Assembly: GCA_048013815.1 (NCBI GenBank)
Contig: CM106586.1
Location: 18,166,001 to 18,230,000 of the forward strand
Length of the DNA: 64,000 nucleotides
Direction of reading: 5' to 3'
DNA from: Setoptus koraiensis
Lineage: Eukaryota > Animalia > Arthropoda
The position numbers and the translations under genes are program-made. The notes below the pieces were generated by a model, which was not told the DNA's origin, did not search any database, and saw only the letters and a program-made list of their open reading frames with translations. Shown here in pieces: positions 1,901-48,696 of the stretch; position 1 is the stretch's first letter; each line of letters starts with the position of its first letter.

Positions 1901-4661
1901 ATGAACAGTCACACTATGACCTCAGAGTCGCACCAGCAGCATCATCATCCAAACTCACCTGTAGAACCACAATCAAAGACCACATCAAACAATGTGTCAC
2001 CATTCAGTGTTGCAGCACTATCTCAACCCCATCAACCAAACAGGAATTCTGCAACATCGTCACCCACACATAGCAATCACGCCACAAATAGCTCTATAAA
2101 CACATTGATTAATCAACAGCAACCAACCTCTGTCGACATGCAACCATCAACAACGGCGGCGGCCTCAGCGGCGGCCGCAGTAGCAGCCGCTGCTGTGTCT
2201 CACAGTTACTCTATTCAACATTTGGTCAGCCAACGACAACAACAGATGGGTGCTGCTGCTGCAGCAGCAGCGGCAGCCGCAGCCGCTGCAACGGCCTCAC
2301 CTCAATCAACAGCAGTCAGCCTAGCCGCGGCCCAAACAGCTGCCTCTTTGGCCATGTTCCGTCATCATCAACAACAACAGCAACAACAACAACATCCAGC
2401 ATTACATCATCATTCTCATCATCATCAACACCAGCAGCAACAACAGCAACCGCATCCTCATTCACACCAGCACCTGATTCCATCTACAACAAATTCTCAT
2501 CATCATCATCATCATAATATACATTCGCATCATAACCCATTGCACTTATTACCACCGCAACCTCATCATCAGTCACCAAATGATTCTGTTAATCTTCCTC
2601 AACATCCACATCATCATACTTCAGTTATAGGTGGCTCCAAACCAAAAGTTGCCACGCCGGTAGTTGTTAACAAGATTGAACAATACAAAAGAGAGAACCC
2701 AACTATATTTGCATGGGAGATACGGGACCGTCTCATTAAAGAATGTAAGTAAACAAAAGACAATAGCAATCATGACCCAAATCTATATCTTGATATACGT
2801 GATACAATATTGTCAGAACTTTATGGGAACATGCATGTCTGTTCACAGCAATTGTGGTTAAATCATTATCATCGATCCTATATAGAGCCAACAATTTAAG
2901 GCAGCTTTTCCGGACTTGTTCGATTTAATGACTTGCACAAGACCTATAATGTCAAGAATCTAACATCAGTATTACACATGTATAAGTAACAACCTCCTAC
3001 TTTGATCCTTATTCTCATTGATGTATCTATAAAACATACAGCTGTATGTAGCAGTAATACTGCCCCATCAGTCTCTTCGATCAATCGAATTCTGCGTAAC
3101 AGAGCATCGGAACGTGCTCAAGCCGAACTTGCTAGAACTTTCCTCTTGAATGGGACCCTGCCACCAAATCCACAGCAGCAACAGCATCTACATGGTAATC
3201 ACGAGCCAAACAATAGTAGCCTTATAAGCAATCACCAGCAAATTAATGGAGACAGGAGGAACAGTAGATCCGCATCTGGGTACAACTCAGCATCAAATAC
3301 CCCAACTAACACCTATAATGGGCCCCCATCATCACTGTCGTTGGCTAGACCAACTATGTCTGCAGCTCTAGGCAGTGGCCTAGATTCATCGGCCGCTACT
3401 GCCGCATATCACCAATCTCTCATAGAGCAACATTTAGCCATAACTCAACACCTCTCAATGAACGCCTCAGGTAGGTCACCAGTATAATGTTAAAGGACCA
3501 ACATAAAAAAGAAGACTCTTTATGAGATTAAATCTGCCACTAGAACAGTTTTCCTATTGTTATTCTACAATCCAAATGACAACTTACTCATGAATTCTGC
3601 ATATCGCATCACCAATTCTTCAATTATTTTTGTTGTTATAGGTTCAACTCTCGGTAATACAGCTAACAATCAACAGCAAAATTTATACTCAATATGGGCA
3701 GCTGCAGCTGCTCTTGCTGCTTCTAGACCACAACATCAACCTCATCTGGGCCACACTCTCGGTGGGCTTCCTTTCAATGGATCTAACAATCCATTCCTAC
3801 ATTTCGCTGCTGTTGCAAACTCGTCAAACTTTTTGCAGCAGCCAGCAGACCATTTTAATCAGTTCACCAACGCTTTTAATCAAGCAACTCAAGACTACTC
3901 GCCTAATCTTTTAAATGGTAACCCTAATGGCAATGTCAGTCTTAAACACAATGATGATGGACTGGCGGAGGAAGCCGAACTTAACAATAACTCCAATGTC
4001 AAGGAATCTCAAGGTAACATCAATGAACAAAACAACAAGTTACTAGCAATATCATAAGATGTGCGCATAATCAAATCTAATCTAAACTATCTTCGTATGA
4101 TTGTAACCTCAATTTATATATGCACATATATAATTTATTCATCATTTTTGTATATTTTTCTATAGAGAAGGCGGTGAAGATAGACAACGAAAACTTAGAT
4201 GCTCTGATAACAGAAGAGAATCATATACGGATGAGAAGGATCGCTTGAATGTATCATCTCCTGAAAGAGGAACTGATGACGAGGAAACCTCACCTTCCAC
4301 ATCTTCAAAGTTTCGCCGGAATCGTACAACCTTCTCTCACAAGCAGTTGAAAATATTAGAAGAAGAATTTGAAAAGACGCATTACCCCTGTGTTGCAACT
4401 CGTGAAAAACTGGCTCAAATAACCAAGTTAAGCGAGGCTCGAGTGCAAGTCTGGTTTAGTAATAGGAGAGCTAAATTTAGGAGGCATCAGAGATTACCAT
4501 ATTCAAATGATCATCCCGGCTATAGATCTCCAGATACAGATCTCTATGATACATCATCTAATTGCTCCCTTATAGATGACGATGATCAAGAAAACATCTC
4601 CGATTGTAATAGTAGCTCTAAATCGGATAGACAAATTTATGACATAAATCAATCATCCTAG
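1901..4661 (+). CDS. eyg: Eyegone/twin-of-eyegone-type Pax transcription factor (RED-only paired domain plus S50 homeodomain); join(1901..2744,3042..3470,3642..4013,4168..4661), about 712 aa; last junction uncertain
   Basis: [36 protein letters not shown] joins via GT-AG intron 2745-3041 to [26 protein letters not shown]. Homeodomain [10 protein letters not shown]...[11 protein letters not shown]...[20 protein letters not shown]. Both match the Eyg signature as I recall it. Phases of introns 1-2 are consistent. Confidence 0.9.
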
Positions 4662-4858
4662 TTGAATCAAAATTTATACGGATCTATCGTTCACATATGA
4701 TTATGTACATTAAATGTAAGAAATCATTATTATTTGTATATAAGATAGTTAATAAATGTGGATAACTAGAATAGTCAGAGATGCGAAAACTAGGCGATTC
4801 TACCGGTATTTATTACTTAATTTACTTTATTCTATAACAACTATTTTGGAATCTTATC

Positions 4859-7384
4859 TCATGATGGATACCTTTTTGAAGGTTTGTAACTTTTTCTAGG
4901 ACCAAAAGTGTACTTTGTTTCTCCCTCAACCGCTACTGGTATTTTAGGTGGTGGTGCAATATCGTTTGCGTTATTTGCTTCGTCTGGATTACTTGGATCT
5001 ACCCATCTTTTGAGATTATTATCATAGTACATGCTGTTTTCTTTGGGAAGTATCATTGGTTTTGCTTTGTTTTGGGGCAAGATACTTGAGGCCACTTTGG
5101 AGAACATGTTCTTCATATTCGATTGAAGACTACTTGCAGGTTGCTGATCTCCAGATTGCGACTCCCTGGGAGGTTCAACATCTTTCTTTTCATTCGGAAT
5201 CGAATTTCTAGGAGTCGGAGACTCTATTGGGCCGTTATCATACTCATTTAGCGGGGAGATCGGTGACCCGAAGGAATTCACTGGATTATCCGTGAAATCA
5301 TGATGTGGCATATCATCTTGTAAGGGTGAAGATGTTGTCATTTGGGGCTCGGCAGGCTGAGGAGACAATATGGCAGGGTCATTGGCATTTGTACTGTTAT
5401 AATGTACATTTGCATTATAGGCCTCGGTTGTGCCTACCTCGAGTGCTGGAGGTTTTTGATAAGCCCAGAACGGCGGAGGTTGATAGTCAGGCAATGGTGG
5501 TTTAAATCTATCTTCTAAAACGTCATTGACAACTTCTAGAGATGGTTTGTGGGGTGGTTCATTTAGTTGGCTGAGCTTCTCATCCTCTAACTGTTCCCCA
5601 TTGTAACCGGATTCTTGAAAGTTTCTATCGACGTTCTTGTAAGATAAATCATGGCTCATATAATTTTGGTTATCATGCAACGGACTATTGTTGTATGTTG
5701 GCAAAGAGTTCACGATAGAATTTCTTGATTGAGATTCCAAAGCATAACCCTGTGAAGATTCATACTCATTGTCTACGATTCTGCCCTCGCAAGTTGCACA
5801 CACTTCGGCTAAATAGCCAACACAAGACCTTATTGCAAGCCAGTCATAAGATGAATCTTCAATTTGTATACTTCTTCCGTTTCCAAATCTTTGTTCAGTT
5901 TCAAATTGCTTGAGAGCCTCTTTGATGTCATCAATATATCCATTGCATTTTTGGATCATTCCATAATCCAACAATTTGGAGGCGAAGATTATTTTATATG
6001 GAACTAAATTGATTAGATACTCATAGTTACTCGGTGCAACACTTAGATTGCGTGCAAACTCCCAAACTTCGTTCAAGATCAAAAGCTCTGGGCTCGATAT
6101 TGTTTGTACTCTTGAGCCAATAGTTTCTGTCAAAACGAATGAAGAAAGGGACCGATGAGATAGATCATCGGACCTAGAATCGTCATTCGATAGTCCGAAA
6201 TTGATTAAATGATTCCTATCCTTATTTCTTATTGCAACAATCAGTTTAAATAGTTCGTTCGATGTATCATAATCAATACCTTGTATCTCACATTCATTGG
6301 ATATTAATATTGCGAAGAGATAACTATCCTTTGCAGAGACAACTGGAATCTGATTTAATGAGTTACTATCCCATTGTTTTAAAATTTGATTTAGCAAGGT
6401 CCTGTATAAACAATAAACAGGTCGTAAATCTATATGGACTTTAGTCTGATCGGGCCTCATCTGTACTAAAGTCTGGCCCTCTAAGTCAGCTATGAATCTT
6501 GAATTTAGTGAAACAATTGGATCATCTAGCAGCCTAGCTTCTTTTGTTTCTACTGGTAAACAATTCACAGGCTGATATTTGTCTAAGAATGATAAGCATT
6601 GAGCATGTGGCCATAATTTCTGACTAGCAGCATATTCAATAGCTGATTTTCGTTTTCCTAATAATAGTTGCTTGATAAACTTATTTATTGCTTCGTCTTT
6701 TTCATTTATTTTAGTGTCACCAGGGTCTAAAAGCATCTCAGCCATATCAAGTCCGCTAACGTTTCCATGCTGAAGTATCAACTTCAGTAAGAGATTCCAT
6801 ATAATAGTTCTTTGTTCATCGTGCGAAAATTTTTTCCTACGTTGAAATTCATTTTGTTGCAATGTTGTAATATAATTTATTATACCACCGGTCGGCGATT
6901 GACTGCGTAGAGGCCCAGGCCAAACATTCAAGAATATATCATACATCTCATAATCTAAGCTTACGAGGTAGTCTGACATAAGGGACATTGGCGCAATTGT
7001 GATACAGTTGTGCTGGACTTGTATGAAAAAATTTCGTCTTGTAAATTTTGCCACAGTATGCTTAGTTGGGAACTTTTCCGGTGAGTCATCAAACGCCGAC
7101 GGGTTCAGAGATAAATCTAACGAGTACTTGGCCATGAATTTGTAATACTCTATCTCATAAATTTTAGTCCACTCGGATTTGTAAGCTTCCCTAGAAAGTT
7201 GGCCACTTTGTAATAAAACGGCTGTACGTCGAGTGGCCTCATCTCTAGCGGAATGAGTGGCCTTCATTTGCAGTTTACCCAGTATTATTCCATGCTGAAC
7301 ATTCGATTCAGCTACGCTAAAAGTGGAAAATCTCGAGGAATCCATATTGTAATCTGTTTTGCCTATAAGATATGGTTTTTGCAT
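4859..7384 (-). CDS. Sec16: Protein transport protein Sec16 (ER exit site scaffold), short intronless form of about 841 aa; start at ATG 7384 or 7345
   Basis: Central conserved domain motifs LLLGKRKSAIEYAASQKLWPHA and ELLILNEVWEFARNL...VPYKIIFASKLLDYG. C-terminal MILPKENSMYYDNNLKRWVDP. One uninterrupted ORF. Confidence 0.88.
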   Translation of the reverse strand: MQKPYLIGKTDYNMDSSRFSTFSVAESNVQHGIILGKLQMKATHSARDEATRRTAVLLQSGQLSREAYKSEWTKIYEIEYYKFMAKYSLDLSLNPSAFDDSPEKFPTKHTVAKFTRRNFFIQVQHNCITIAPMSLMSDYLVSLDYEMYDIFLNVWPGPLRSQSPTGGIINYITTLQQNEFQRRKKFSHDEQRTIIWNLLLKLILQHGNVSGLDMAEMLLDPGDTKINEKDEAINKFIKQLLLGKRKSAIEYAASQKLWPHAQCLSFLDKYQPVNCLPVETKEARLLDDPIVSLNSRFIADLEGQTLVQMRPDQTKVHIDLRPVYCLYRTLLNQILKQWDSNSLNQIPVVSAKDSYLFAILISNECEIQGIDYDTSNELFKLIVAIRNKDRNHLINFGLSNDDSRSDDLSHRSLSSFVLTETIGSRVQTISSPELLILNEVWEFARNLSVAPSNYEYLINLVPYKIIFASKLLDYGMIQKCNGYIDDIKEALKQFETEQRFGNGRSIQIEDSSYDWLAIRSCVGYLAEVCATCEGRIVDNEYESSQGYALESQSRNSIVNSLPTYNNSPLHDNQNYMSHDLSYKNVDRNFQESGYNGEQLEDEKLSQLNEPPHKPSLEVVNDVLEDRFKPPLPDYQPPPFWAYQKPPALEVGTTEAYNANVHYNSTNANDPAILSPQPAEPQMTTSSPLQDDMPHHDFTDNPVNSFGSPISPLNEYDNGPIESPTPRNSIPNEKKDVEPPRESQSGDQQPASSLQSNMKNMFSKVASSILPQNKAKPMILPKENSMYYDNNLKRWVDPSNPDEANNANDIAPPPKIPVAVEGETKYTFGPRKSYKPSKRYPS

Positions 7385-7411
7385 ATATAATACGTTTGAG
7401 CGGAATAGGTA

Positions 7412-7783
7412 CAATATAATTATATAAATAAATTAAATCTGTATAATGGATTGTTTGCGAATTGACTCACAATGAGTTTGCCGATATTTCGCTGTCAAAC
7501 GTTCGCATATGACTCCTTGACATACACGTCAGGTGTTCTGGATGCGGTGCACAAACACCGCACCACTGCCCTTAATAATAGCGCGAGATACGAAAGTTTA
7601 AAACAACATTTCGTCGAAGTCGAGCGCCTATTGAGTAAGAGACGACCATTTCTTTGAATTTATTGTTTACAACAAAAATATTCACTCGATACATAACATT
7701 CAACTTGACAGACTCTCTCTTCGTGATGATGATTAGTGTATCAGATAGAATATATATGATAGAACATAACTATATATTATCGG
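7412..7783 (-). promoter_or_regulatory. Duplicated upstream element, copy A (faces Sec16)
   Basis: Inverted homolog of 12148-12472 with six identical 16-28 nt blocks. Contains TGACGTG (7525-7531, minus) and TGTAAACA (7664-7671, minus) and ends 27 nt before ATG 7384. Regulatory role is inferred. Confidence 0.6.
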
Positions 7784-8266
7784 TGTTTACATGTTTATGA
7801 CTGTCAAAGGAATAATTAAGGACATAATCAATGTGATAATAAAGAGAAAAAAGGTAGAAGATTCATCCTGTTGAATAAACTGCCAACTGTAATAACATCT
7901 AACACCTTGGTGTGCGAATAAAGAAGAACTCTACGTGTAAAGTGATTTTGCTAGCTAAGATCACTCGGCTAAGGGCAATTTACGAGGCTTCGAACCGGGT
8001 GGGGGAGGTATGAAAACTAGTTGGTTCGGATTTTTTGCGTTATTGTTATCAGTAATATCCTGAGTATTGCGCTCATTGGAGCCGCTGTTTGTAGATGCAC
8101 TGCTCCCTACTTTGGGATTTGTTCCGTCCTTCTTACTCATGTTCAAATTAACTCTTATCAATCCCTTAAGGCTAAGATCCAGTTTGGGCTGATTTTCCTC
8201 AACCGGATCACTGTCTCTGGCTTCATGCTCAAGTGTTTTAAAGTGATCATGCAGAGCGACATTCAA
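7547..8266. repeat. 720-bp direct duplication, copy 1 (equals 10335-11054)
   Basis: Offset 2788. By eye only three substitutions: 7556/10344, 8116/10904, 8138/10926. Confidence 0.95.
7961..8266 (-). pseudogene. Duplicated 3' half of NECAP (LNVALHDHF...KLPLAE*), no PHear N-terminus; probably forms the 3' UTR of the upstream orphan gene
   Basis: Near-identical to 10749-11054. Begins at a TTG overlapping the TGA of ORF 8263-9456. Confidence 0.85.
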
Positions 8267-9456
8267 TGCTGCATCTTCATTGCCTCTTCATATGAAGGAA
8301 GATCCTCACTCCAAGAGAGATGATTCTGTGTATGAGGATAAATCTCCTCGAACTTGGGTGGCGGATTATTCAATGATTGACTTGAGTTTGTAAAGTTACT
8401 ATTTGGTAGAATACCATGAGCTCTCTGACCTGCGTTGTTGAGAAATACTTCCGAGTCGACAGCCGAAGGGTCATCAACTGATATGGATAGCGATTGCCGA
8501 TCCGCTGTCTGGCTATGTAAATGATGGTGCCTATTCACTGCTGTTATGAAAGGGTGCAACCATTGTGATGCCGTGGAGGCATCCTGCCTGATGCGTCTAT
8601 GTCCTGACATCGATTGTCTTCTGACTGTATGAATAGATTTGAGTTTTCGTAACTTTGCAGTGAGAATTAAGATGAGGAGAAGGATCCATAATAAAACGAT
8701 AGACACAAATGAGAATTGAGTTGCACTCAATACAGGTTGGAAGCTAGATTGAAGTTCGTTGATATCAAAAGCTCTTTGACATGCGTTAGTTTTCGAATTC
8801 CAAAACTGACCCCGCTTACATTCTCGTCCAACTAAGTCTAATGGCACACAACCCAAGGTTCTGTTTGATTCATAATAGAGATGATGGGTTGATCTGCAGT
8901 TACATCTTTGCTTGCGTTGATCACAGATTAAATCGGGATGTCCGCAAGGATTGTTTCTAGAGCATTCTTTTAACAATCTAGGTTTGTTTGAAGATGCAAT
9001 TAGGCATTTGTTCGTCGCTGGGTCCCACAGGAAAGCAAGGTGTTGTAAGGAGGGGGCGGGAAAACAGTTACATGGATGACCAAACTTCTTTGATATAGGT
9101 GGTCGACAATAGTCTGTCGTCTCGTTTCTATTAACAAGGGCCATCAGCTTATCCGGTAGCTGGGACGTTTGAATAACAGTTATAACTGGAGCTGCAGTAG
9201 CTGAATCTTCATATGATAGTAGATTTTTAACTAATAGATTTGGCCGTAACAATAGGTTTGGAGTATCTGTATCATCAGAATTCAAATGTAAAAGATTCTT
9301 GCTGTCTTTGCTGTTAATACTGGCTAAATTACTGAGCGAAACTTCATCGTGATTTGTCCTGGTAGGAGGATTCTTTTCATCGCTCTGATCAGATAACTGT
9401 TCTTCGACGAAAGAGTTTGATTTGGGTTCAGGTGTGGTCTTAATGCTATCAGCCAT
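8263..9456 (-). CDS. Uncharacterised single-pass membrane protein, 397 aa: Cys-rich (EB/EGF-like) region, TM helix, cytoplasmic PY-like motifs
   Basis: ATG-initiated intronless ORF. Cys-rich segment (CNC...KC...C...PC...LIC...RCNC...GC...C...FW...AC). Hydrophobic FSFVSIVLLWILLLILILTA followed by KLRK. Tail motifs PPPKFEEIY and LPSYEEA. Confidence 0.8.
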   Translation of the reverse strand: MADSIKTTPEPKSNSFVEEQLSDQSDEKNPPTRTNHDEVSLSNLASINSKDSKNLLHLNSDDTDTPNLLLRPNLLVKNLLSYEDSATAAPVITVIQTSQLPDKLMALVNRNETTDYCRPPISKKFGHPCNCFPAPSLQHLAFLWDPATNKCLIASSNKPRLLKECSRNNPCGHPDLICDQRKQRCNCRSTHHLYYESNRTLGCVPLDLVGRECKRGQFWNSKTNACQRAFDINELQSSFQPVLSATQFSFVSIVLLWILLLILILTAKLRKLKSIHTVRRQSMSGHRRIRQDASTASQWLHPFITAVNRHHHLHSQTADRQSLSISVDDPSAVDSEVFLNNAGQRAHGILPNSNFTNSSQSLNNPPPKFEEIYPHTQNHLSWSEDLPSYEEAMKMQH

Positions 9457-10334
9457 GATAATAATTGGAAAATATCAGTTTAAAACATCAATGACTCAGG
9501 GCCAACATCAGTAAGTCGATAGCTAAATTGTTAAATGAACATGTGTAGTTCGATTAGCGAAAGGGTTTCTTTCTACTCCTGCACTGATACCTTACTGATT
9601 GTTACAGATGAAAAAAATTGGTTGGTATATTACGATATTTATTTTATTTCGGGTGCAAATAAATATCACGCGATCGTCCGAAGGGCTTGTCGTAATGAGG
9701 TCCAAATAAGAGCGTTCGTTGTTGGATCAATTCCTTGTCTGATACTCCATTATTGATGATAAATGTGGGTTAATAGTTGCGTCATTGTAACGTTAGAACC
9801 AAGTGTGGGAATTGTGGTTGTTGTTTTCGGTATAGTGTATCGGTAGGAACAATGCAGCTTGCGAAACGATTCACAAAAGCTTAATTTTTGTTGTCTGATC
9901 TAAATTGTTCGAATTCTGAACAATACCACTATTTGCATCAATATAAACATAACCTATAAGCAGATGAAGCAATTCTCTTTTGCTAATGCAGCTCAAATTT
10001 CCCAGCAATAAATAAATAAATAGTCTTCTAGGCCATGTTTAACGAATCCTCATTAGATTGTTAGGGTATATTCGATGTGTGCCTTAATTCAAGAGTGAAA
10101 ACTGTAGATATTCATTCTCAGGGCTAAATCCTGTGGGGACAGTGTGGGTTTTTTCCAATTCAAATGACTTAGATCAAATTCTAACCGCGAGAGGCGTTCG
10201 CAGCGCTTTTGAAATCCGTGCAGTGTTTCACTGAACGATCTCCCCTTCTCGAATAATTTATTTTGACATCAGTGGAGCGCTGATATGATTATTGACGCTA
10301 GTGGCGCTCTGGTTGGTAGGCCCAAATGTAAGTA

Positions 10335-11054
10335 GTGCACAAAAACCGCACCACTGCCCTTAATAATAGCGCGAGATACGAAAGTTTAAAACAACATTTC
10401 GTCGAAGTCGAGCGCCTATTGAGTAAGAGACGACCATTTCTTTGAATTTATTGTTTACAACAAAAATATTCACTCGATACATAACATTCAACTTGACAGA
10501 CTCTCTCTTCGTGATGATGATTAGTGTATCAGATAGAATATATATGATAGAACATAACTATATATTATCGGTGTTTACATGTTTATGACTGTCAAAGGAA
10601 TAATTAAGGACATAATCAATGTGATAATAAAGAGAAAAAAGGTAGAAGATTCATCCTGTTGAATAAACTGCCAACTGTAATAACATCTAACACCTTGGTG
10701 TGCGAATAAAGAAGAACTCTACGTGTAAAGTGATTTTGCTAGCTAAGATCACTCGGCTAAGGGCAATTTACGAGGCTTCGAACCGGGTGGGGGAGGTATG
10801 AAAACTAGTTGGTTCGGATTTTTTGCGTTATTGTTATCAGTAATATCCTGAGTATTGCGCTCATTGGAGCCGCTGTTTGTAGATGCACTGCTCCCTACTT
10901 TGGAATTTGTTCCGTCCTTCTTACTTATGTTCAAATTAACTCTTATCAATCCCTTAAGGCTAAGATCCAGTTTGGGCTGATTTTCCTCAACCGGATCACT
11001 GTCTCTGGCTTCATGCTCAAGTGTTTTAAAGTGATCATGCAGAGCGACATTCAA
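10335..11054. repeat. 720-bp direct duplication, copy 2; includes a partial copy (C, about 10335-10570) of the Sec16/TMED9 upstream element without the TGACGTG block
   Basis: Direct sequence comparison with 7547-8266. Confidence 0.95.
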
Positions 11055-11402
11055 ATCGAATGAATCTGATCTATCAGTGAAACCGATGCCCAACAATGCA
11101 GTGCGGCCAGTATCACTTTGAACTTTAACCACAAAATATCTACTTGAGTCACTGACAGGCTGTACGGAGGGCCCTGGGTATTTGAGTATGGGCGCCTGGG
11201 CGTACAATTGTCCTGTGGTTTCATCTTCAATCCTTAAGAATACTTTGTCCGCAATGGAGACAAGTCTCATTCGTCCTTTCCAATCTGGATTCTCCAAATT
11301 CCAATCTGATGCCTTGAATCCCCTGGAGGTTGATGTTAGAGGCGGTATTCTATATACAAATATCTTTGGTTTAACGAGTAGAACACGTTCATAATCACCC
11401 AT
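10749..11402 (-). CDS. NECAP: Adaptin ear-binding coat-associated protein (NECAP, PHear/DUF1681 domain), 217 aa, intronless
   Basis: [18 protein letters not shown]...GFKASDW...WKGRMRL...[12 protein letters not shown]...[28 protein letters not shown] is the NECAP signature. Confidence 0.93.
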   Translation of the reverse strand: [217 protein letters not shown]

Positions 11403-12147
11403 AATAGTTTGTTAATGGTATGCTCCAAGTATTTCGGAAGATAAGCATATAAATGATGGATGAAGTTTGTTGTTTTATGTAACTGGACCAAATGTTTCAA
11501 CAACTCTATTGGAGCCAACAGTTCTCGAGAGTGAGATGAGTAATATCATTCAATTTTAATACTAATGTATTTGATAACTGTACTGTTATAGACTTGGCTT
11601 TCACCATTTATCAAATTTTGTAAAACGCTAAAGATTATAAAGATACCATCGATTCTGGGTGATAATCTAACAACAATAAATAAACAACAACAATATATTA
11701 ACAAAAAATTGATCTTTTGTATTGGCTTGAGTTTCAGAAACATCTAATGTTGCCCTAGAAATTCACGCAAGCGAGTCGTAGATTTTCAGTCGTAATGTGT
11801 AATTCGAATGCTGTATGATTGTTCTTCTAATTTTGTCTCAACTAGTTGAAAAAAGTCCGCTAGAGCGACGCCCGAAGGCTTCCCCACAGCAATACAAGTG
11901 AGAAGCGATTTGATAGCGATGCAAGTCTTTCCAGTGTGTAGTATCAGGCGGAGAGGAGTGCATGCTTTGCTTTGAAAGCAGTCATTGTTACAAAGTTTGA
12001 CGCAACACTGTATGTTCGATTGTGCATTTTCAGAGGCGCGCCAGCACCTCTTGTGGATCACTCTGTCAGGCCAAACTTCCAGTCTAAATATCTACGATGA
12101 AGAACCTCCCCCACCTGGTTCGTAAACTGGAATCGCCAATGGCTCGG

Positions 12148-12472
12148 TGATACTACTATGTGTAGTTCTATCATATATATTCTATCTGATACTCAATCAC
12201 TTATCACAAAATATCATGATTATTTCGGGTGATGATCTTTATTGTAAACAATAAATTCAAAGAAATAGTCACCTCTGACTCACATGGCGCCCGAATTAGA
12301 CGGGATGTTTTAATCTTTCGTATCTCGCGCTATTATTGAGCGCATTGGTGCAGTGGTTATGCACCGCATCTGGAACACCTGACGTGTATGTCGAAGAGTC
12401 ATATGAAAACGTCTGACAGCGAAATATCGACAATCCTACCTATAGATTTAATTTATTTATATTATAATATTG
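12148..12472 (+). promoter_or_regulatory. Duplicated upstream element, copy B (faces TMED9; lies between the divergent NECAP and TMED9 genes)
   Basis: Inverted homolog of 7412-7783. TGTAAACA at 12243-12250, TGACGTG at 12380-12386; ends 30 nt before ATG 12503. Confidence 0.6.
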
Positions 12473-12502
12473 GACTAAAGAAAGAATCACATTTATCTCA
12501 CT

Positions 12503-13171
12503 ATGCACAAACCAAATCTTATAGGCAAATTCTTGGCTTGGTTTTTGGTCTCATCATGCCTGATCTCTGTTTGTCATTCTCTTTACTTCCATATCGGCGA
12601 AACTGAGAAGCGTTGTTTTATTGAGGAAATACCAGACGAGACCCTATTAATGATTAATTACAAACTACAATTACATGATCCCGTCACTGGGGGTTTCATG
12701 CAGGCAGCTCCAGGACTAGCTATGCACGTTGACATACGAGACCCAGATGATAAAGTCATTCTGTCCAAAACATACATGGCCGAAGGAAAAGTTGCACTCA
12801 CATCGCACAAACCAGGCGAACATGTCATCTGCATACACTCAAACTCAACGAAATGGTTCACTGGTGGCCAGCTGAGAGTTCATTTTGACATCAGAGTGGG
12901 AGAACACGCTCTCGATTACCGAAATATTGCTGAAACTGAGAAATACACACAATTACAACTAATGGTTAGGCAATTGCAGGACCAGGTTGAGCAGATCAAT
13001 AAGGAGCAAAACTATCAAAGGATACGAGAGGAGAGATTTAGAGCTACATCGGAAAGTACCAGCAATCGAGTATTCTATTGGTCGATTGTCCAAGCTACTG
13101 TAGTGACAGGTGTCGCTGTCTGGCAAGGTAGACACCTTAAGAGGTTTTTCGAAGCTAAAAAACTTGTATAA
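12503..13171 (+). CDS. TMED9: p24alpha family cargo receptor (TMED4/TMED9/eclair-like, GOLD domain), 222 aa, intronless
   Basis: Signal peptide, [21 protein letters not shown], coiled coil [25 protein letters not shown] helix, and C-terminal [13 protein letters not shown] dilysine tail. Confidence 0.95.
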
Positions 13172-13280: not shown

Positions 13281-14873
13281 TTATGCAAATGCAAGTACTT
13301 CTACGTCATTACACGTGAAATCTTTATTCTCACATAAGGGTTGATTATTGAAAGTCTTGCAATTATCTGTTTTGCCACGAGTTAAGTCGGCATCTAGCCA
13401 TAGACCAAAGCTACCATTTCCGCTGCCTATGATCAGCTCTTGAGCAGTAGCATTCATGAATAGTTGAGTAGATACTGAATCGATGACACTTTCGCGGTCT
13501 CGATTAGTTTTTCCAACCCACAAGTAAACGGCAAACTCTGGCCATAATGTAAATAGGAATGTATCTCCGTTACCAAAGTAACTAGCGGATTTTTGTGCTT
13601 GCTCATTTCTCAATGACCACGATGACGAACAAAAAGCACCAAAAACTTCATTACGTATAGTTCTTATAATAATAATAGTCTCTTCATATGGGTCTACTCT
13701 GGAAAAGAACGTCTGTAATGATGTACCATCTTGGTTAGAATTGAAAACTATTTTGACTATTTTAACAGCCGCCCTCTCAGGTAAGTACTGCCATAGGTTA
13801 TCTAATAAACGATAATCATCTACTATAGATGATTTGAAGGACCTTGGCGCTATCCTAGGGCTTATTATGACATTAGTTAACATATCGTTTCTAGGTTGTT
13901 GTGTTAGATTGTAATTATTCTTTTTTCTCATGATTGATTCAATGATCATGGTTGCCTTTATTTCGGCGCTACGACTAGCTTTTGCAATCTTAACGGTAGA
14001 TATCCTTTTCAATGAACGCGCTTCTTTAATAAGTTGATCAACACCACCACGTGGCTCTAGGATTGTTTCTAATCTCAAACAAAATTCAAACATTTGATCG
14101 GCAACTAGAGAACGTTGATTAGTTTGTTGTCTATAACGTTCTAATAATGCTAAAGCGATACGATATAAGAATTTTTGTCCATCAATCAACCAACAATCCA
14201 ATATTTTAACACAGTAGGTGAATGGCAGTGCTACAAATATCCATTTATACCAATCTAGGAAAGGTGTGTCAAATGTAATATTATGATTTGTTATCTGACT
14301 ATTGTCTCCATCTAATGTTGCCAAGAAGCGATTCTCTTCTCTGACTAGATCGCGCATTAGAAATGGTGCGATTATTCCGAATTTTGTACATAATTTGATT
14401 AAAACTATTATGTCACGTACATGCTCCAAGCGTGTAGTTGGCATTAAAACACGTTTAAATTGTCTGTCACGAGTAGCTCGTTGATTCTGTTGAAGTAGAT
14501 CACAAATATATCGATATGTTTGTTCATGGTCAAAATAATGTAAGAATATCGCTACTACGGGATATAGTATAGGCGCAAATGTTATCTGAGGATGCGTTTC
14601 GCACAATTGCCATAATATCTTTTCAGCTTGGATGCGACCAGCGCTAGATAAGTTATAAAATCTAAGTAGACTAGAATCAATATAAGTGGGCAGTCGGCCA
14701 ATGGGTTGCATCAATGACTGTTGTTGTTTTAGTTGTTGCTGCAGTACACTTGTATCAGTATCAGTATTATTATTAGTAGTAGTAGTGTCAGTAGCGGGTT
14801 TAACTGGTGTTGCTGGTGGTGATATTGTTGCTGCCCCATCGGGGACCAAAGTTGATAGCTGTACATCCAACAT
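13281..14873 (-). CDS. TBC1D24: TBC1D24/skywalker-like TBC plus TLDc protein, 530 aa, intronless
   Basis: TBC part: PQITFAPILYPVVAIFLHY, ILDCWLIDGQKFLYRIAL. TLDc part: VFNSNQDGTSLQTFF, EVFGAFCSSSW, YFGNGDTFLFTL, GLWLDADLTRG, CKTFNNQPL. Confidence 0.92.
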   Translation of the reverse strand: MLDVQLSTLVPDGAATISPPATPVKPATDTTTTNNNTDTDTSVLQQQLKQQQSLMQPIGRLPTYIDSSLLRFYNLSSAGRIQAEKILWQLCETHPQITFAPILYPVVAIFLHYFDHEQTYRYICDLLQQNQRATRDRQFKRVLMPTTRLEHVRDIIVLIKLCTKFGIIAPFLMRDLVREENRFLATLDGDNSQITNHNITFDTPFLDWYKWIFVALPFTYCVKILDCWLIDGQKFLYRIALALLERYRQQTNQRSLVADQMFEFCLRLETILEPRGGVDQLIKEARSLKRISTVKIAKASRSAEIKATMIIESIMRKKNNYNLTQQPRNDMLTNVIISPRIAPRSFKSSIVDDYRLLDNLWQYLPERAAVKIVKIVFNSNQDGTSLQTFFSRVDPYEETIIIIRTIRNEVFGAFCSSSWSLRNEQAQKSASYFGNGDTFLFTLWPEFAVYLWVGKTNRDRESVIDSVSTQLFMNATAQELIIGSGNGSFGLWLDADLTRGKTDNCKTFNNQPLCENKDFTCNDVEVLAFA

Positions 14874-32800: not shown

Positions 32801-35800
32801 CGAGCCGCGCGGACAATCGCATACCATCAAATAATCATTACTTTGGACTGCTCATGCGGCCGCAAAAGAAGACGCAAAATGCGAACGAAATACGAAATGC
32901 AAAACGAGAAAGATGCAACATGCCAACTGCTGCATTGCGACCAGCCATGACGCGCCGCGATATGACGCGCACAGTCATTGCGTCATTGTTGGGCCCCTCT
33001 TGCCCGTTGACGCAACTCTGACACATCGGCAACTGGCTGGCACAGTTGCCGCAGCCAAGCCGAGACCAGTGTCGAGCTGGCCCAAAATAAAACTGTTTTT
33101 GCGCGCACATCTTACATAACGTCTTACAAGTCATGATATATATATATGACTGTTTCTTTGGCCCGTTTGCGCTACTTCTACTCGGCTCGGCTCAGCTCGT
33201 TTCAATGGCAACCCAATGCGCCGCACACAATCATTTTTTATCTATCCGTGCACCTATGCGCGCCTTTCTGGCCCGCATTATCCGTTGGCGCGCTGTGCCG
33301 CTTTGGGCCGGCTGGCCCGGCGCTGCTCGACTTGGTCCCGGCCCCTCGAAACTGTCGCGACTCGCTGCTAGCTGGCGGGCCGGCGGCCGGAGCTGGTGAC
33401 AGAGCATGATGTGATTATAATTGAGATCATTTGTGTGCATGCCGGAGAGCGGGCACCGCGGGCCGGCTTTCAACGGCGCGCCGGACAGGCAGCGTAACAG
33501 ACAGAGAGCGCGTGAGAGAGAGAGAAGGCACAAGAATGAAAATAGAGAATAAAATAAAATAAAATGTATCTCTTGTCATTTGTTGTCGGGCATCTCGCAT
33601 CTCGGCACCTCGCTTTGTGTGTGCTTGTCGCGCTTGCAACGGGCCCCGGTCGACGGGCCCCGGTGGGCGGCTGCCCGAGGCGAACCGGTGCCAGTCCAGC
33701 AGTTGGCCCGCAGTTGCCCGTCCGCTCGGGATCTGCGTTCGTCGGGGCGACTGCGGACGCAGAGTCGCCGAATCGCATCATCGGACTGGAGGCCATTCCG
33801 ATGGGGGGCACGGCAACGTTTTTGGGCCAGTTTCGTGTTTAGCTGACATTTGGCTGCTCTCGAGTCTCGACAACATGGCAACGCCGTTGAGTGGGCCCGC
33901 AATTGATCGCAATTGGTCAAAATCGTCAATTGAATTCAAGTGTCGAGCTCGACAAGCGACACTCAAACACTGAGGCGCATTCAAATTCAAATCGCCAATT
34001 GTCGCAACGTGTTGGCGTGTGTGTGTGTGTGTGTGTGTGTGATCATTTATTCAGAGGCGCGCGATCATCAGTCATGCTACAAAAGTCATGTTACGAGAGT
34101 CATGTTGTTACGTAAGCAAGTGCCCGCTGCCCACACTGGCTTACGTAACAGCATGAGTTTGGCCAGTACAAGCGGATAGATACGGATGGCTGCGAGGTGT
34201 TGCGATGGTCAATTGAATTGAGCGGCCAGTGGCGGCTTAAGCGCCGTATGAGCAATGATGATGATGATGATTACGGTTGCTGTAACAACAATTTGCTGCA
34301 AACCAACTCGGCAGCAATAAAATGACAGCATTACAAGCAGTGATTGTGCACAAGTGGCGCTACCTCTGCTCGCCGCTGGCAAGCTAGCGTCACCAGCGGC
34401 GAGCTAGCGTCACCAGCGGCGAGCTAGCGTTACCAGTGGCGAGCCAGCGGTAATGGCAACGTAGCCCGTGGCGCGTGCGTCACGTGTAACTTGTAACTGG
34501 CCTCGTATCATTGTTGTTTGCTGGTCACTTGACCGCTGGCTGGCCAGCCAGCCACCGATGCCAGCCAACGGTCAAGTGATTAACAGAGCCAATCCGTGCC
34601 GCGCCACCTGCTCGACGGCGCGCCAGCTCCGCAAACGACCGCTAGGTGCAGTGCGCACATTTGTTTTGGTTGGCCGTTGGGTCTCGCTTTGCCAAATGGA
34701 GCTGGCGGCGGAAGTCGCAAGTTGCAAGTCGCAAGTCGCCACTGGAAATTAGATACGGCACTGGCCGCCAGTCGCACTGGCCGCTATGGCCGAGCCAACA
34801 GCGGAAAGGTCAGCTAAATGGCCGGTCGGTTGTTGTGCGGCCAGAAGCGCAGTGGCGGCCAGAAGGATGAGAAATTGCCACAGATCTGCGATAGATTTGC
34901 TGTGGCGGTCGGCCGGCCCGCCACTGGGCTCGCCCGAGCCAAATAGCTTTGCCAAATTGCACCCGCTCGCCGTTAGTCGGTTGGTCGGGGCCCCTGTTTC
35001 GGTTACTGGGGCGCCTGCCGGCTGCTCGTAGCGATTTGTCGGCGGCTCGCAGCGATTTGTCGGTTGCTCGTAGCGATTCCTCGGTTGGTCGGGCCGTTTG
35101 TCGGACTGGCCGGTCTGGTCGGCCGGCCGACGGGCCAGAGCGGCAGCGCCAGGCCAGCAGCGACTGGGCAGCGCGCAGCAGGCCAAAATGAAATGCCCAA
35201 ATCGGCCGAATTGGCCGAATAAAATGACGACACGGACAGACGAGTGGCTATTTTTGCAAGTTGCAAGTTGTTTGGCGCAACAACAACGCCGAAACAACGC
35301 CGAAACAACACAAACAAGTGCTCAATCATTAGATTCTAATCTAAACAGGCAGCGCTGCGTTACATAACCGCGCTGGCTGGCCGCCATCGCAAGCGCGCTT
35401 GTTGCGGATAACGGGCAATTGTGTTACGGATAGCGCCCAAGCTTGCGTTGCGGACGGCGCCCGATCGCGTTGCGGGCGGCTCCCGATTGCGTCGGGGACG
35501 GCGGCCAATCTGGGCCCGCGCGCCGGCCCAATGGCCGCCAATTGGCAATATTTGGCCGCTGTCTGCGGCCGCCGTCCGCGGCCGCCGTCTGCAGAGATAC
35601 TTGTCAGTGGGGCCCGCGCGAGCATCTTGCTGTGCGCCAGTCGGCTCCGGTTGTCAGTGTGCGGCATATCGCTTATTGGGTGAGTTTGTCATCGCTGCGC
35701 CCAGCGCCGGGCCCCGGCCCCAGCGACGGCCCAGCGACGGCCGAATCAGCGCGAGCAAGCGGGCCGGCCGAAAATGGCCGCCGTTCATCATTATGTCATC

Positions 35801-38800: not shown

Positions 38801-41800
38801 GCCGGGCCGGCCCATTGAGGGGTCCCTCGCCCGTCTCGAGAGGTCCGCTTGATGCGCACAGGGCCACACACTTGATTCCGGCTGTGCATCAAGCGGCTGT
38901 GCATCAAGCGGCTGTGCAAGTGATCATAATTGTTGCCCACTAGACAAACACTTGGCATTTGGCAAATTTCTGCTGCCACAATCACGGGCTAACGGGGCCA
39001 ACAATGATTGCGCAAACGGAAGAGAGATAAAGATCGAGGCTTCAACTGTGTTCAAATGTGCGCCTTGCGTGACCAACGGGGCCCGCCAACGCGGGGGCGC
39101 CCGTTTCCGTTGGCTGCCACCAGCCAGCGTCCATATTACTGCTATGATCCATAATATTAATGTTTAATATGCTGTATCCAGTTTCCTTGGCCGCATATAT
39201 CGCATATATCGCATATATCGCATATATCGCATATATCGCATATATAGATGAGCGAGCGGCACCTCGTGTGGCCTCGTGTCGCACCAATCGCCTTGCTGCG
39301 AGCGGCCGACCTAGCTGAAACCGGATGAAAGCGAGCCTAACGCGAACCCTAATGATGGCCCCACACACACACACACATAATCACTCATTCGGCAAATAAT
39401 AATGTATAAATATAATATGCGGTCTGGTGCCAATGTTGCCGTTGCCCGATAATAATTATCGCCCAGTCAAGAGCCTAATCACTTGGCCGCTCGCTTGCCG
39501 TCAAGTGCCGATGGTTGCATCCATCTGGCCACTTATTATGTGTACCACTGCACATTGGCTACTTATTGCGCTTATATTAATCGGTTGCATTGTCACATAG
39601 TTACCACATACACTGTATAGTATACATAGTATAGGGGGCGCCTTGCGAGATTGCGCCCCCTATACTATGTACACCAAAGGCCCGTGGCAAGTTGCTCTAG
39701 TCGCCTCCACAGCTAGAGCAACTTGTCACGGGTTCTGGGAGATGAATAAGAGAGTTTTGGGCCATGAATAACTGTATTTGTGTGCGCCGTTACCATTGGG
39801 CAACAATGCGACAAAGTCAATTGTTCATCGTCGCGCCTACATTTTGGCCCCATTGAGCCGCACAACTCGTGAGCCGGCCCACACACATATTGCGGCTCAC
39901 AATTTGTGGGGTGCCCCAACGGATATCAACCGGCACATGTGCGCTGCATGAGCACTGGCGGGCACAAACTGTCGGGCGGGCACAAACTGTCGGGCTGGCA
40001 CAAACTGTCGGGCCGGCAAACTAATCCGCACACAGATTAGTTTGCCGACCCGACAGGGGAGGCGTCAAATGGTCAAATGGTCAGCAAATGGCCATATGTC
40101 CGTTTGTATCAGTATTGCTTTGGTTGGCCGTCGTGGAGGGCTTACATCATGTAAGCTACACGACACTCACAACTGAACATATTGCCTCGATTGCGAGTTC
40201 ATGCACATGCCACTGGCAGGCTGGCTTGAGGGGCCACAATTGGCCAGATTATGATCTGGCAGATCGTTTCGGTGCTAAAAGATCAATCAGTGGCTGTTGT
40301 GGCAAAACAAGCCCACAATCATACCAATTGGTCACTGGATTGTCACTGGTGGTCAACACATTGTCGGTGGTCAACACATTGTCAGTGGTCAACACATTGT
40401 CAGTGGTGGGCCCATCCATGGGACACAATGCGTTGACCGCCGACAAGGTGCAATACATATCTCGCTACATGTCTATCTGTGGGTCGATATTGGTTGTATC
40501 CTATTGGCGATCGTATCACCGAGACGAGCGAGCAATCTTGCCATCAGCGCAATCCCATCAGCCCACAATACTATCAACGCGACAGATGTTGCTCGCTCAT
40601 GTTGAGCGCGCGATCACACTGCGCTGCCCATCGGGGGCCCCCTCGAATCGATTATGTAATCATCGGTGAGCGGCCACACACATTCAAAATCAATCTATCA
40701 AGGTAATCGATCATCTGGTGCCATTCACGCCACACTGACTGGCCAGTGAACTGACCATTGAACTGACCATTGAACTGACCAGTTGAGTTGAGTGGAGTGG
40801 AGTGGTCGAGATGATCATTAGCTGAGCTGTTGGCGTGATATTCACAGCTATTCTAGCAACCAGTTATTATGACCACGATCATCATGAGTCATGATAAGAG
40901 AGAGCCCATTAGCAATTGAAACAATTGAACAGTGATAACAACCATTGCCGGCAATTAGCCAAGCCAGGTTGTTGTCGGTTCATTGGGTTGGCTGGGCCCG
41001 CGTGTGGCCATTAGTTTTGAGGGCCCGTTAGTTTTGCATCACTGGCTTTCATCGTTCAAGTGAAAATGATAGCCATAATGGTGTTGCGCGAACCGGCCAC
41101 CCTTCGCTTAGCTGTGCACTGTGAACGAGGGCAACAATGGTCGCGCCCGTCATCGCCAAGCAGCAAACCGACCGTTGCCAGTTGACCAGACCAGTCTATT
41201 TGAGCCCAATTCGAGCCCAATTCGAGCCCAATTCGAGCCCAATTCGGGCCCGATTCGAGCCAAGTGATGCGATCACTTTCATCGGTCGCCTTACCAACTT
41301 GCAGTTGTTGTATTGTACAATTGGTGCCGAGACCGAGATGCAACGTTTGTGATGCAATTGTGTGATGCAATTGTATGGGGCCGATCCGCGGCCGACATGC
41401 AATAACTAATGTGCTGCAATCATCATTTATAATTGCTGCTGCTGCTGCTGGGCACACACAAATGGCACAAACAGGTTGGCGAGGTACGCGGCCACATGCG
41501 GCGACAATACCAACAGATACCAACAGATACAAGTTGCGGTGTGCAACATGCGCTGTTTTGAGCGAATCTAATTGAATAAGAACATAGAAAACATGTTAAG
41601 CTAATTAGCGAACCGATCCATCTTGCTTAATCACGTGGTCACTTGTTTGTGTTTGCCTGTTGTTGGCTGAGTGATCATGACACCGTTGCCAGTCTAGTGG
41701 CGAGCTGGCTAGTGTACTAGTGCTGGCAACCAGAGTCTAGTTACTAGAGGCAAACAATTATGTAAGAGCAAGCAAGTGGCAGTAACAAGGTGATAGAACA

Positions 41801-48579: not shown

Positions 48580-48696
<117 letters not shown>

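Follow-up and report, generated by a model that had tools for sequence, protein, structure and literature searches.

Inverted copies of the TMED9 upstream region and start codon stand before Sec16 and TMED9 in the gall mite Setoptus koraiensis

Genes and repeated elements at the locus

We analysed a 64,000-nt stretch of the Setoptus koraiensis genome (assembly GCA_048013815.1, contig CM106586.1, positions 18,166,001 to 18,230,000; hereafter the window), in which Sec16, NECAP and TMED9 lie close together. Sec16 occupies 4859..7384 on the minus strand when read from an upstream in-frame ATG at 7384 (Pfam TPR_Sec16, E 3e-16), and an intact NECAP gene of 217 aa, for which orthologues were found, occupies 10749..11402 on the same strand (Pfam DUF1681/NECAP, E 1.4e-49). 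On the plus strand, 12503..13171 encodes a p24-family protein of 222 aa with an EMP24_GP25L domain (Pfam, E 5e-52) and a signal peptide starting MHKPNLIGK; its best match among solved structures is human TMED9 (E 8e-83, versus 4e-25 for TMED10), and its orthologues carry the names eca or eclair. Between Sec16 and NECAP lies a minus-strand ORF of 397 aa (8263..9456) with no Pfam match, and on its other side NECAP is followed by a single-copy spacer (11403..12103) that is unique in the genome.

The first-pass annotation had reported that 7412-7783 and 12148-12472 are homologous in inverted orientation at roughly 75-80% identity and keep six identical blocks. Both observations were borne out: self-BLAST aligned 7478-7765 with 12433-12165 at 79.2% over 289 nt (E 3e-64), and a gapped alignment recovered the same six perfect-match runs, of 28, 25, 23, 20, 19 and 16 nt. 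Across the 429 columns of that alignment (7781-7358 versus 12149-12529) identity is 72%, or 83% when each gap run is counted as one event. As delimited by the alignments, the first copy (copy A; 7385..7781, minus strand) comprises the distal part of the NECAP 3'UTR followed by a TMED9-type upstream region, and carries AATAAA at 7664-7659, TGACGTG at 7531-7525 and a TATA-like block at 7440-7422. In its counterpart before TMED9 (copy C; 12149..12502, plus strand) these motifs lie at 12250-12255, 12380-12386 and 12444-12462, respectively.

The duplicated unit is larger than had first been described. The copies had been thought to end 27 or 30 nt before an ATG; instead, after ~40 diverged nt, homology resumes at both ATGs and covers nine codons, and the stretch from the TATA-like block to the ATG, the expected location of the transcription start site, is the most diverged part of copies A and C. 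On the Sec16 side, 7358..7384 (minus strand) is a copied TMED9 start codon plus eight codons, in frame with Sec16, matching 12503-12529 at 25 of 27 nt (MQKPYLIGK against MHKPNLIGK). Homology to copy C stops exactly at 7358, after TMED9 codon 9, and the 27 nt that follow are, at 50% identity, unrelated, which places the left breakpoint junction at 7357/7358. At the far side, homology begins inside the NECAP coding sequence (8009-7960 versus 12104-12151; 72%, E 2e-4), so that the last ~16 codons of a NECAP 3' half (7961-8009, minus strand) are common to copy C. There, 12104..12151 on the plus strand is a decayed relic of these codons and the stop, with PPPPGS kept before a frameshift; no further NECAP homology is found left of 12104, and the right breakpoint junction falls at 12103/12104. 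The earlier proposal of a paralogous promoter or 5' leader stands as regards the upstream regions, but the unit, 426 nt long in copy C and 652 nt in copy A, also includes the NECAP 3'UTR with its AATAAA and the TMED9 start.

A third, partial copy of the element (10335-10553) lies inside a recent direct duplication of 720 bp, in which 7547..8266 recurs at 10335-11054 with three differences (at 7556, 8116 and 8138; 99.6% identity). This copy (copy B) is the 3'UTR of the intact NECAP gene (10335..10748, minus strand; AATAAA at 10452-10447), is cut at 10335 and lacks the promoter-proximal blocks. A NECAP 3'UTR part of ~178 nt (7782..7959, minus strand) is present in copies A and B and missing from copy C. 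Next to it, the duplicated NECAP 3' half (7961..8266, minus strand; 101 codons plus stop) abuts the stop codon of the 397-aa ORF, which belongs to a 2068-bp segment (8267-10334) that separates the two 720-bp copies and is itself single copy in the genome. A later, separate event would have inserted this 2.07-kb segment with its ORF, duplicating 720 bp (the 3' half and 3'UTR of NECAP together with some of the element) and so giving rise to the third element copy.

With regard to artefacts of assembly, the 720-bp pair is similar enough that it could in principle reflect a haplotype or join error. The inverted pair, however, is 17-28% diverged with indels and so is no assembly duplicate, and in a close relative, too, a single contig of 13,252 bp carries Sec16, NECAP and TMED9; we regard such an artefact as very improbable. 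The first-pass annotation had proposed a count of copies as the means of separating a few local duplicates from a transposable element, and a search of the whole 48.8-Mb assembly found three copies, all within this locus, and no dispersed repeat. Short copies of a few hundred bp, in both orientations and near genes, do resemble a MITE or other transposable element lying by chance before two genes, and a Tc1/mariner-like element with 74-bp terminal repeats is present ~11 kb past the right end of the window. Yet the unit contains coding pieces of two host genes, neither terminal repeats nor target duplications were seen, and the copy number refutes a transposable origin, to which we give practically no credence. 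An RNA gene was likewise rejected, as no Rfam covariance model matched the region 7000-13000 at E <= 1. A conserved small ORF in the element (MSRSHM.. versus MSKSHM..) is not coding, since four of its five differences alter the amino acid.

The Sec16 start and the origin of the inverted copies

The Sec16 start in the window differs from that of its orthologues. Eleven of twelve eriophyoid Sec16 orthologues (807-903 aa) begin MP(A/S)SDISR.. or with a shorter variant, which aligns with MDSSRFS in the window, encoded from an ATG at 7345-7343 (minus strand) that lies 39 nt downstream of the TMED9-derived in-frame ATG. MQKPYLIGK is absent from all twelve, and the TMED9 of the close relative starts MQKPNLICK. 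Homology to the TMED9 upstream region begins 12 nt before the orthologue-type ATG; the 12 nt in between (7346..7357, minus strand), now read as codons TDYN, are a remnant of the Sec16 5' leader, beyond which the gene has no further upstream DNA of its own. Because the orthologues start at the position of MDSSRFS, Sec16 appears to have been cut off from its former upstream DNA at a point 12 nt ahead of its ATG and to have gained the TMED9 copy.

Each inverted copy joins an intact gene to a stub of another. A full NECAP reading frame runs on from copy A, whose opposite end is a TMED9 stub of 9 codons that adjoins the Sec16 leader. Copy C leads without interruption into full TMED9, and at its other end a NECAP stub of ~16 codons meets the unique spacer. 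A single staggered-break inversion predicts precisely this combination of intact gene and truncated stub on each copy, provided that TMED9 is the gene that kept its upstream DNA, and the earlier suggestion of such an inversion as one route to the duplication fits this reciprocal continuity well. From the anatomy of the sequence, we consider it likely that both elements are products of one small staggered-break inversion that flipped NECAP. Before the event, the order would have been Sec16 (minus), a spacer of ~700 bp, NECAP (plus), a short intergenic stretch and TMED9 (plus). One break, with a stagger of ~430-650 bp, would have extended from ~16 codons ahead of the NECAP stop as far as codon 9 of TMED9, and the other would have fallen upstream of Sec16, 12 nt from its ATG. 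Through fill-in and end joining, NECAP and its spacer would then have been reversed, with the staggered stretch left in mirrored form at either side. The duplicated unit would consist of the NECAP tail, the NECAP 3'UTR including the poly(A) signal, the entire upstream region of TMED9 and the ATG of that gene with eight codons. The present spacer at 11403..12103 would be the former head-to-head spacer of Sec16 and NECAP, inverted along with NECAP. TMED9 would have retained its own upstream DNA, and that of Sec16 would have been replaced by the TMED9 copy directly in front.

An identical present-day anatomy would arise if a segment running from NECAP through the intergenic stretch into the start of TMED9 had been copied in inverted orientation by fold-back or template switching in replication and had landed before Sec16, the original NECAP being later deleted to its last ~16 codons. 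Errors of a replication type do occur at this locus, as the duplication-with-insertion behind the 720-bp repeat indicates, and the spacer between PAN3 and Sirt1 is a near-perfect, fold-back-like palindrome. This course nevertheless needs at least two events, with a deletion ending exactly at the end of the homology, whereas an inversion accounts for both truncated stubs together in a single event, and we judge copying of this kind improbable.

Gene order in other mites indicates that the locus has been rearranged in this lineage. When protein searches with Sec16, NECAP and TMED9 were compared, only the close relative linked the three genes; in Fragariocoptes setiger, NECAP and TMED9 are on different contigs. 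On four outgroup metagenome contigs that carry an eriophyoid Sec16, its neighbours are Pax and an unnamed gene of 469-507 aa, Sec16 and Pax being in opposite orientation in all four, and NECAP, TMED9 and the 397-aa ORF are absent from these contigs. It is these different neighbours and orientation that point to rearrangement. The unnamed gene was not found in the S. koraiensis genome with either a protein query or a three-sequence profile, and comparison ruled out the 397-aa ORF as its homologue.

A staggered-break inversion would have well-described counterparts in Drosophila. In the melanogaster group, 17 of 29 inversions carry inverted duplications attributed to staggered breaks, 46 bp to 1.9 kb long with a median of 321 bp in D. 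yakuba (Ranz et al. 2007, PMC1885836), and further cases are known at D. mojavensis 2h and 2q (Guillen and Ruiz 2012, PMC3355041), published lengths reaching 4.3 kb (PMC1885836, PMC3355041). As in these Drosophila cases, the duplicated sequence had been non-repetitive and present only once, and parts of genes are included in it; it now occurs twice, mirrored around the putatively flipped segment, one copy of each cut gene decays, and its length (426-652 nt) is within the published range. At the second breakpoint, comparison of the 5' end of Sec16 with the right-hand end of the spacer showed no inverted repeat; duplication is confined to a single breakpoint, as it is in 12 of 18 published cases (PMC1885836). 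Unlike the Drosophila chromosomal inversions, the segment proposed to have been inverted here is tiny: it holds one gene and would have measured ~1.3 kb between the copies when the event took place, or ~2 kb if one copy is included. A further difference is that the duplicated piece is a complete promoter region plus start codon, joined in frame to the gene that loses its upstream DNA. As a scar of rearrangement, the locus is of a known kind, and its consequence is unusually neat.

Promoter use and the conserved blocks

With a copy of the TMED9 upstream region directly before Sec16, and its own lost, the arrangement of the sequence suggests that Sec16 is probably transcribed from a TMED9-derived promoter. 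The TATA-like block lies ~30-60 nt before both ATGs, within the -80 to -21 zone, which holds 20 of the 33 TATA[AT]A hexamers located upstream of 51 other genes (264 kb). If Sec16 does use this promoter, the ER-exit-site organiser would be under the control of the promoter of a p24 cargo receptor, coupling two early-secretion steps, and if transcription mapping agrees, the locus would amount to a natural experiment in promoter swapping between two early-secretory genes.

The first-pass annotation had also read the block-wise conservation as a sign of selection, for which comparison with a uniform model gave only marginal support. For copies A and C, six runs of at least 16 nt were found against 3.1 expected (p 0.03), but neither the longest run (p 0.28) nor the sum of squares (p 0.06) was significant. 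The element has ~14% mismatches against ~26% in the NECAP relic (chi-square ~4.3, p ~0.04). One interpretation, which would add to either origin model rather than compete with it, is that selection kept the blocks as a common secretory-pathway module (CrebA/Creb3L-type TGACGTG, Forkhead-type TGTAAACA and TATA box) that co-regulates Sec16 and TMED9. The TGACGTG in copies A and C is a putative CrebA-type site, and this motif is rare in the window (five found against nine expected), two of the five being those in copies A and C. In Drosophila, p24 genes are direct targets of CrebA, and Sec16A is induced by Creb3L1 (Fox et al. 2010, PMC3003312); both genes belong to the class regulated in flies or human cells. 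In common with CrebA/Creb3L-dependent promoters of secretory genes, the p24 gene and Sec16 have a CRE-like site with an ACGTG core, here ~120-145 nt before their starts. In contrast to those promoters, however, the putative motif is not common to other p24 genes, ACGTG being present within 500 bp upstream in none of four (a small test, of the p24 class only), and TGACGTG is found in none of four outgroup Sec16 upstream regions. Moreover, the poly(A) signal of NECAP falls within the TGTAAACA block and accounts for the conservation of this block in copies A and B. Overall, we think a selected module unlikely.

A second shared start and broader reading

A comparable arrangement exists elsewhere in the genome. 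PAN3 and Sirt1, unrelated divergent genes 36 kb away, also have an ATG and first 8-9 codons in common as an inverted repeat (24 of 27 nt). There, the whole 564-bp spacer forms one palindrome between adjacent genes, whereas the Sec16 and TMED9 copies are 4.4 kb apart, have NECAP and the later insertion between them and include a piece of a third gene. In a survey of 264 kb, common starts were found in 2 of 51 divergent gene pairs and in none of 4023 distant pairs. It is possible, though in our view doubtful, that in this compact gall-mite genome staggered-break micro-inversions repeatedly provide a neighbouring gene with the promoter, start codon and initial codons of another, and are tolerated since the duplication supplies a working promoter. 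At Sec16, one staggered break would both have severed the gene from its upstream DNA and made the replacement copy of promoter and start codon, which would provide a clean and dated case in which rearrangement exchanged an essential gene's whole promoter in one step; together with PAN3/Sirt1, it hints at how very compact genomes survive breakpoints in or beside genes. For annotation, the Sec16 start in S. koraiensis is ambiguous between the ATGs at 7384 and 7345, and 12104-12151 is to be read as a NECAP relic rather than as regulatory sequence.

Inverted copies upstream of Sec16 and TMED9

The genes of the locus, each a single ORF, are those for Sec16 (TPR_Sec16; 4859-7384, minus strand), a 397-aa ORF without a Pfam family (8263-9456, minus), NECAP (DUF1681; 10749-11402, minus), an emp24/GOLD protein (12503-13171, plus) and a TBC/TLDc protein (13281-14873, minus), the named ones being assigned by Pfam. 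Among solved structures, the emp24/GOLD protein comes closest to human TMED9 (E 8e-83, versus 4e-25 for TMED10), and NCBI names its orthologues eca/eclair; the best named relatives come from Fragariocoptes setiger, an eriophyoid mite, which marks the genome as that of a gall mite.

The first-pass annotation had claimed that Sec16 and TMED9 are each preceded by a diverged, inverted copy of a ~330-370 bp element. This homology was borne out, far above chance, by a repeat search and by self-BLAST of the window, in which the copy before Sec16 (copy A, 7478-7765) and that before TMED9 (copy C, 12433-12165) are 79.2% identical over 289 nt (E 3e-64); a looser gapped alignment pairs 7781-7358 with 12149-12529 (72%, 429 columns). 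The six identical blocks originally listed are the six longest perfect runs of the global alignment (28, 25, 23, 20, 19 and 16 nt). The copies had been said to end 27-30 nt before the ATGs, which is wrong: about 40 hardly alignable bases are followed by renewed homology at the ATG, where 7384-7358 (minus) and 12503-12529 (plus) share nine codons (25/27 nt; MQKPYLIGK versus MHKPNLIGK). The following 27 nt, at 50% identity, are unrelated. On the NECAP side the homology extends through 8009-7960 (minus) and 12104-12151 (plus; 72%), which in copy A is the final ~16 codons and stop of the NECAP frame and in copy C a frameshifted relic, with no resemblance to NECAP found left of 12104. About 178 nt of copy A (7782-7959) are missing from copy C.

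In its reading direction, the duplicated unit consists of the last codons and stop of NECAP; that gene's 3'UTR, with its sole AATAAA (12250-12255; 7664-7659; 10452-10447) inside the 25-nt block; an upstream region of about 240-265 nt that holds the 23-, 20-, 16- and 19-nt blocks, the last of them TATA-like and ending about 40 nt 5' of the ATG; and the ATG with eight codons. The unit is thus the whole NECAP-to-TMED9 intergenic region plus a small piece of each gene. What had been described as a shared promoter or 5' leader does include a paralogous upstream region, but the duplicated unit is larger, taking in the NECAP end and the TMED9 start.

A partial third copy lies at 10335-10553, inside a 720-bp direct duplication, and searches of the 48.8-Mb assembly with either copy matched these three places only. 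This count rules out a dispersed repeat, and the absence of a match among Rfam families indicates that the element is not a known RNA gene either. The inverted duplication is real, non-repetitive and made locally.

Origin of the duplication and of the locus

The two copies differ in what adjoins them. Copy A runs on into the intact NECAP frame and, at its other end, breaks off in a TMED9 stub that meets Sec16; copy C runs on into intact TMED9, and its other end is a NECAP stub joined to a 701-bp spacer (11403-12103) that is single copy in the genome. In the proposed ancestral order, Sec16(-) would have been followed by the spacer, NECAP(+), the unit and TMED9(+). One inversion with a single staggered break would then have flipped NECAP and the spacer and left the unit on both sides, giving Sec16(-), the unit inverted, NECAP(-), the spacer inverted, the unit and TMED9(+), and would thereby have set duplicated TMED9 upstream sequence, together with the TMED9 start, in frame ahead of Sec16. 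We favor a single staggered-break inversion because it yields precisely both intact-gene continuities and both stubs. The mirror version, in which Sec16 owned the unit, predicts an intact NECAP on the TMED9 side, which is not observed. A staggered-break inversion was one route suggested in the first-pass annotation, and it matches the stub anatomy of copies A and C. Judged from sequence, the inverted duplication is best explained as a putative staggered-break micro-inversion of NECAP that left the TMED9 upstream region and start before Sec16. The inverted piece measures ~1.3 kb between the copies, minus a later insertion, or ~2 kb including one copy, and the repeat search gave no sign of duplication at the second breakpoint.

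Of 29 Drosophila inversions, 17 bear non-repetitive sequence duplicated in inverted orientation; these duplications measure between 46 bp and 1.9 kb (D. yakuba median, 321 bp) and affect one breakpoint only in 12 of 18 (PMC1885836); more such cases, partial genes among them, come from D. mojavensis (PMC3355041). The staggered-break model proposed for Drosophila is the one invoked here, with duplication seen at one breakpoint, although the inverted piece at NECAP is very small compared with the Drosophila cases. The rearrangement would be a scar of a known kind; its interest lies in the apparent one-step replacement of the promoter and start of an essential gene.

Gene order was compared with four metagenome contigs carrying eriophyoid Sec16, from two lineages. 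Their common order is a Pax-type gene(+), an unnamed 469-507-aa gene(-) and Sec16(+), whereas in the window a Pax-type gene (1901-4661, plus) and Sec16(-) stand tail-to-tail. The window's Pax-type gene, which we take to be eyegone-like, encodes only the second paired-box half (profile positions 65-125) and a homeodomain, and occupies several ORFs versus one 589-aa ORF in outgroup contig L009. The unnamed gene of 469-507 aa evolves fast, has no Pfam match and stands on the minus strand, head to head with Sec16 (L009 3638-5047, L011 3418-4941, L012 2722-4245); protein and small profile searches did not find it in the Setoptus koraiensis genome. NECAP and TMED9 are absent near Sec16 in the four outgroup contigs and lie on separate contigs in F. 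setiger. Among the orthologues compared, only a close relative has all three genes on one contig (13,252 bp). Given these different outgroup neighbors and the restriction of the trio to the close relative, the arrangement appears to have arisen in this lineage; its immediate pre-inversion order is one that we infer.

Sec16 start, predicted promoter and constraint

Twelve eriophyoid Sec16 orthologues (807-903 aa) were used to ask whose codons now open Sec16. Eleven start with MP(A/S)SDISR or a shorter form such as MSDISRLS, which aligns with MDSSRFS at the ATG at 7345-7343; the exception is the gene model of the close relative (P0121), which starts further in. None of the twelve contains an MQKPYLIGK-like sequence, and the close relative's TMED9 (95% identical) opens with MQKPNLICK, which argues that the nine codons belong to TMED9, where they encode the charged start of the signal peptide. 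The in-frame Sec16 extension has 13 codons, MQKPYLIGK plus TDYN, the latter being the apparent final 12 nt of Sec16's old leader. The upstream ATG sits in a weak context (T at -3), and the orthologue-type one is flanked by A at -3 and G at +4; either, or both, may serve.

The TATA-like block sits some 30-60 nt 5' of both ATGs. Of 33 TATA[AT]A hexamers upstream of 51 other genes (264 kb surveyed), 20 fall within -80 to -21; the position of the block inside this zone supports the prediction, for copies A and C alike, of a promoter that gives a very short leader, such that Sec16 transcripts would contain the upstream ATG. TGACGTG, presumably a CrebA-type motif match, occurs five times in the window against an expectation of nine; the two element copies account for two of these occurrences. 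ACGTG was found within 500 bp upstream of none of four other p24 genes, and TGACGTG was absent upstream of outgroup Sec16 in the regions examined. Both in flies and in human cells, secretory genes are documented targets of CrebA-type control (PMC3003312).

Block-wise conservation had been read as selection on both copies. With each gap run counted as one event (60 events in 362 columns; 20,000 shuffles), runs of at least 16 nt are in excess (6 observed, null mean 3.1, p 0.029), but the longest run (28 versus 25, p 0.28) and the sum of squared run lengths (3946 versus 3229, p 0.063) are not significantly so, and block sizes are about those expected from an 83% alignment. Ungapped identity is 74.5% in the NECAP relic, 86% in both the 3'UTR and upstream parts, and 78%, with many gaps, from TATA to ATG; the nine codons (25/27) give p 0.15 at the average rate. 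Divergence is somewhat lower in the element than in the relic (chi-square about 4.3, p about 0.04), and constraint on the element is possible.

A younger insertion and nearby inverted repeats

The direct duplication (7547-8266 and 10335-11054; 720 bp, three differences) flanks a 2068-bp segment, single copy in the genome, in which the 397-aa ORF lies. This ORF's stop codon directly adjoins the duplicated 3' half of NECAP, which therefore probably supplies its 3'UTR. Because the element is unbroken across 7547 relative to copy C and NECAP is unbroken across 11054, both outer junctions must be original, and segment insertion and direct duplication therefore happened together; just three differences between the 720-bp copies make the event far more recent than the inverted pair. 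The arrangement resembles either an insertion at a long staggered cut or an assembly error, and such an error would affect that part only.

A second point of interest is an apparent recurrence within this genome. PAN3 (Pan3_PK) and Sirt1 (Sir2-family), head to head at CM106586.1 18136681-18137300, 28.7 kb before the window, have mirrored 32-nt arms over both ATGs (4681-4712 and 5269-5300 of L013, the CM106586.1 sequence left of the window) and an inverted repeat gives the two genes a common ATG and common opening 8-9 codons (24/27 nt); ORF starts and gene identities were confirmed. Their spacer has a 73-nt palindrome arm pair as well. In the 264 kb around the window, 24-25 of the first 27 nt are shared by 2 of 51 divergent ORF pairs less than 8 kb apart, and the number stays below 20 in all 4023 distant pairs.

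Right of the window, two tandem paralogous ~560-aa genes (CM106586.1 18236040-18245035, about 6-15 kb away), both starting ..FKFSIVRHFILI.., have near-identical (98-99%) inverted upstream copies of 241-274 nt. At 18240668-18241787, about 10.7-11.8 kb away, 74-nt inverted terminal repeats (95%) enclose a 183-aa ORF resembling a Tc1/mariner transposase fragment. Self-BLAST of the window also returned four short perfect-center palindromes (34100-34156, 39620-39674, 40005-40056 and 42203-42243; 41-58 nt, 81-88% self-complementary), and dinucleotide microsatellites with one common unit lie at 888-915 and 48581-48694.
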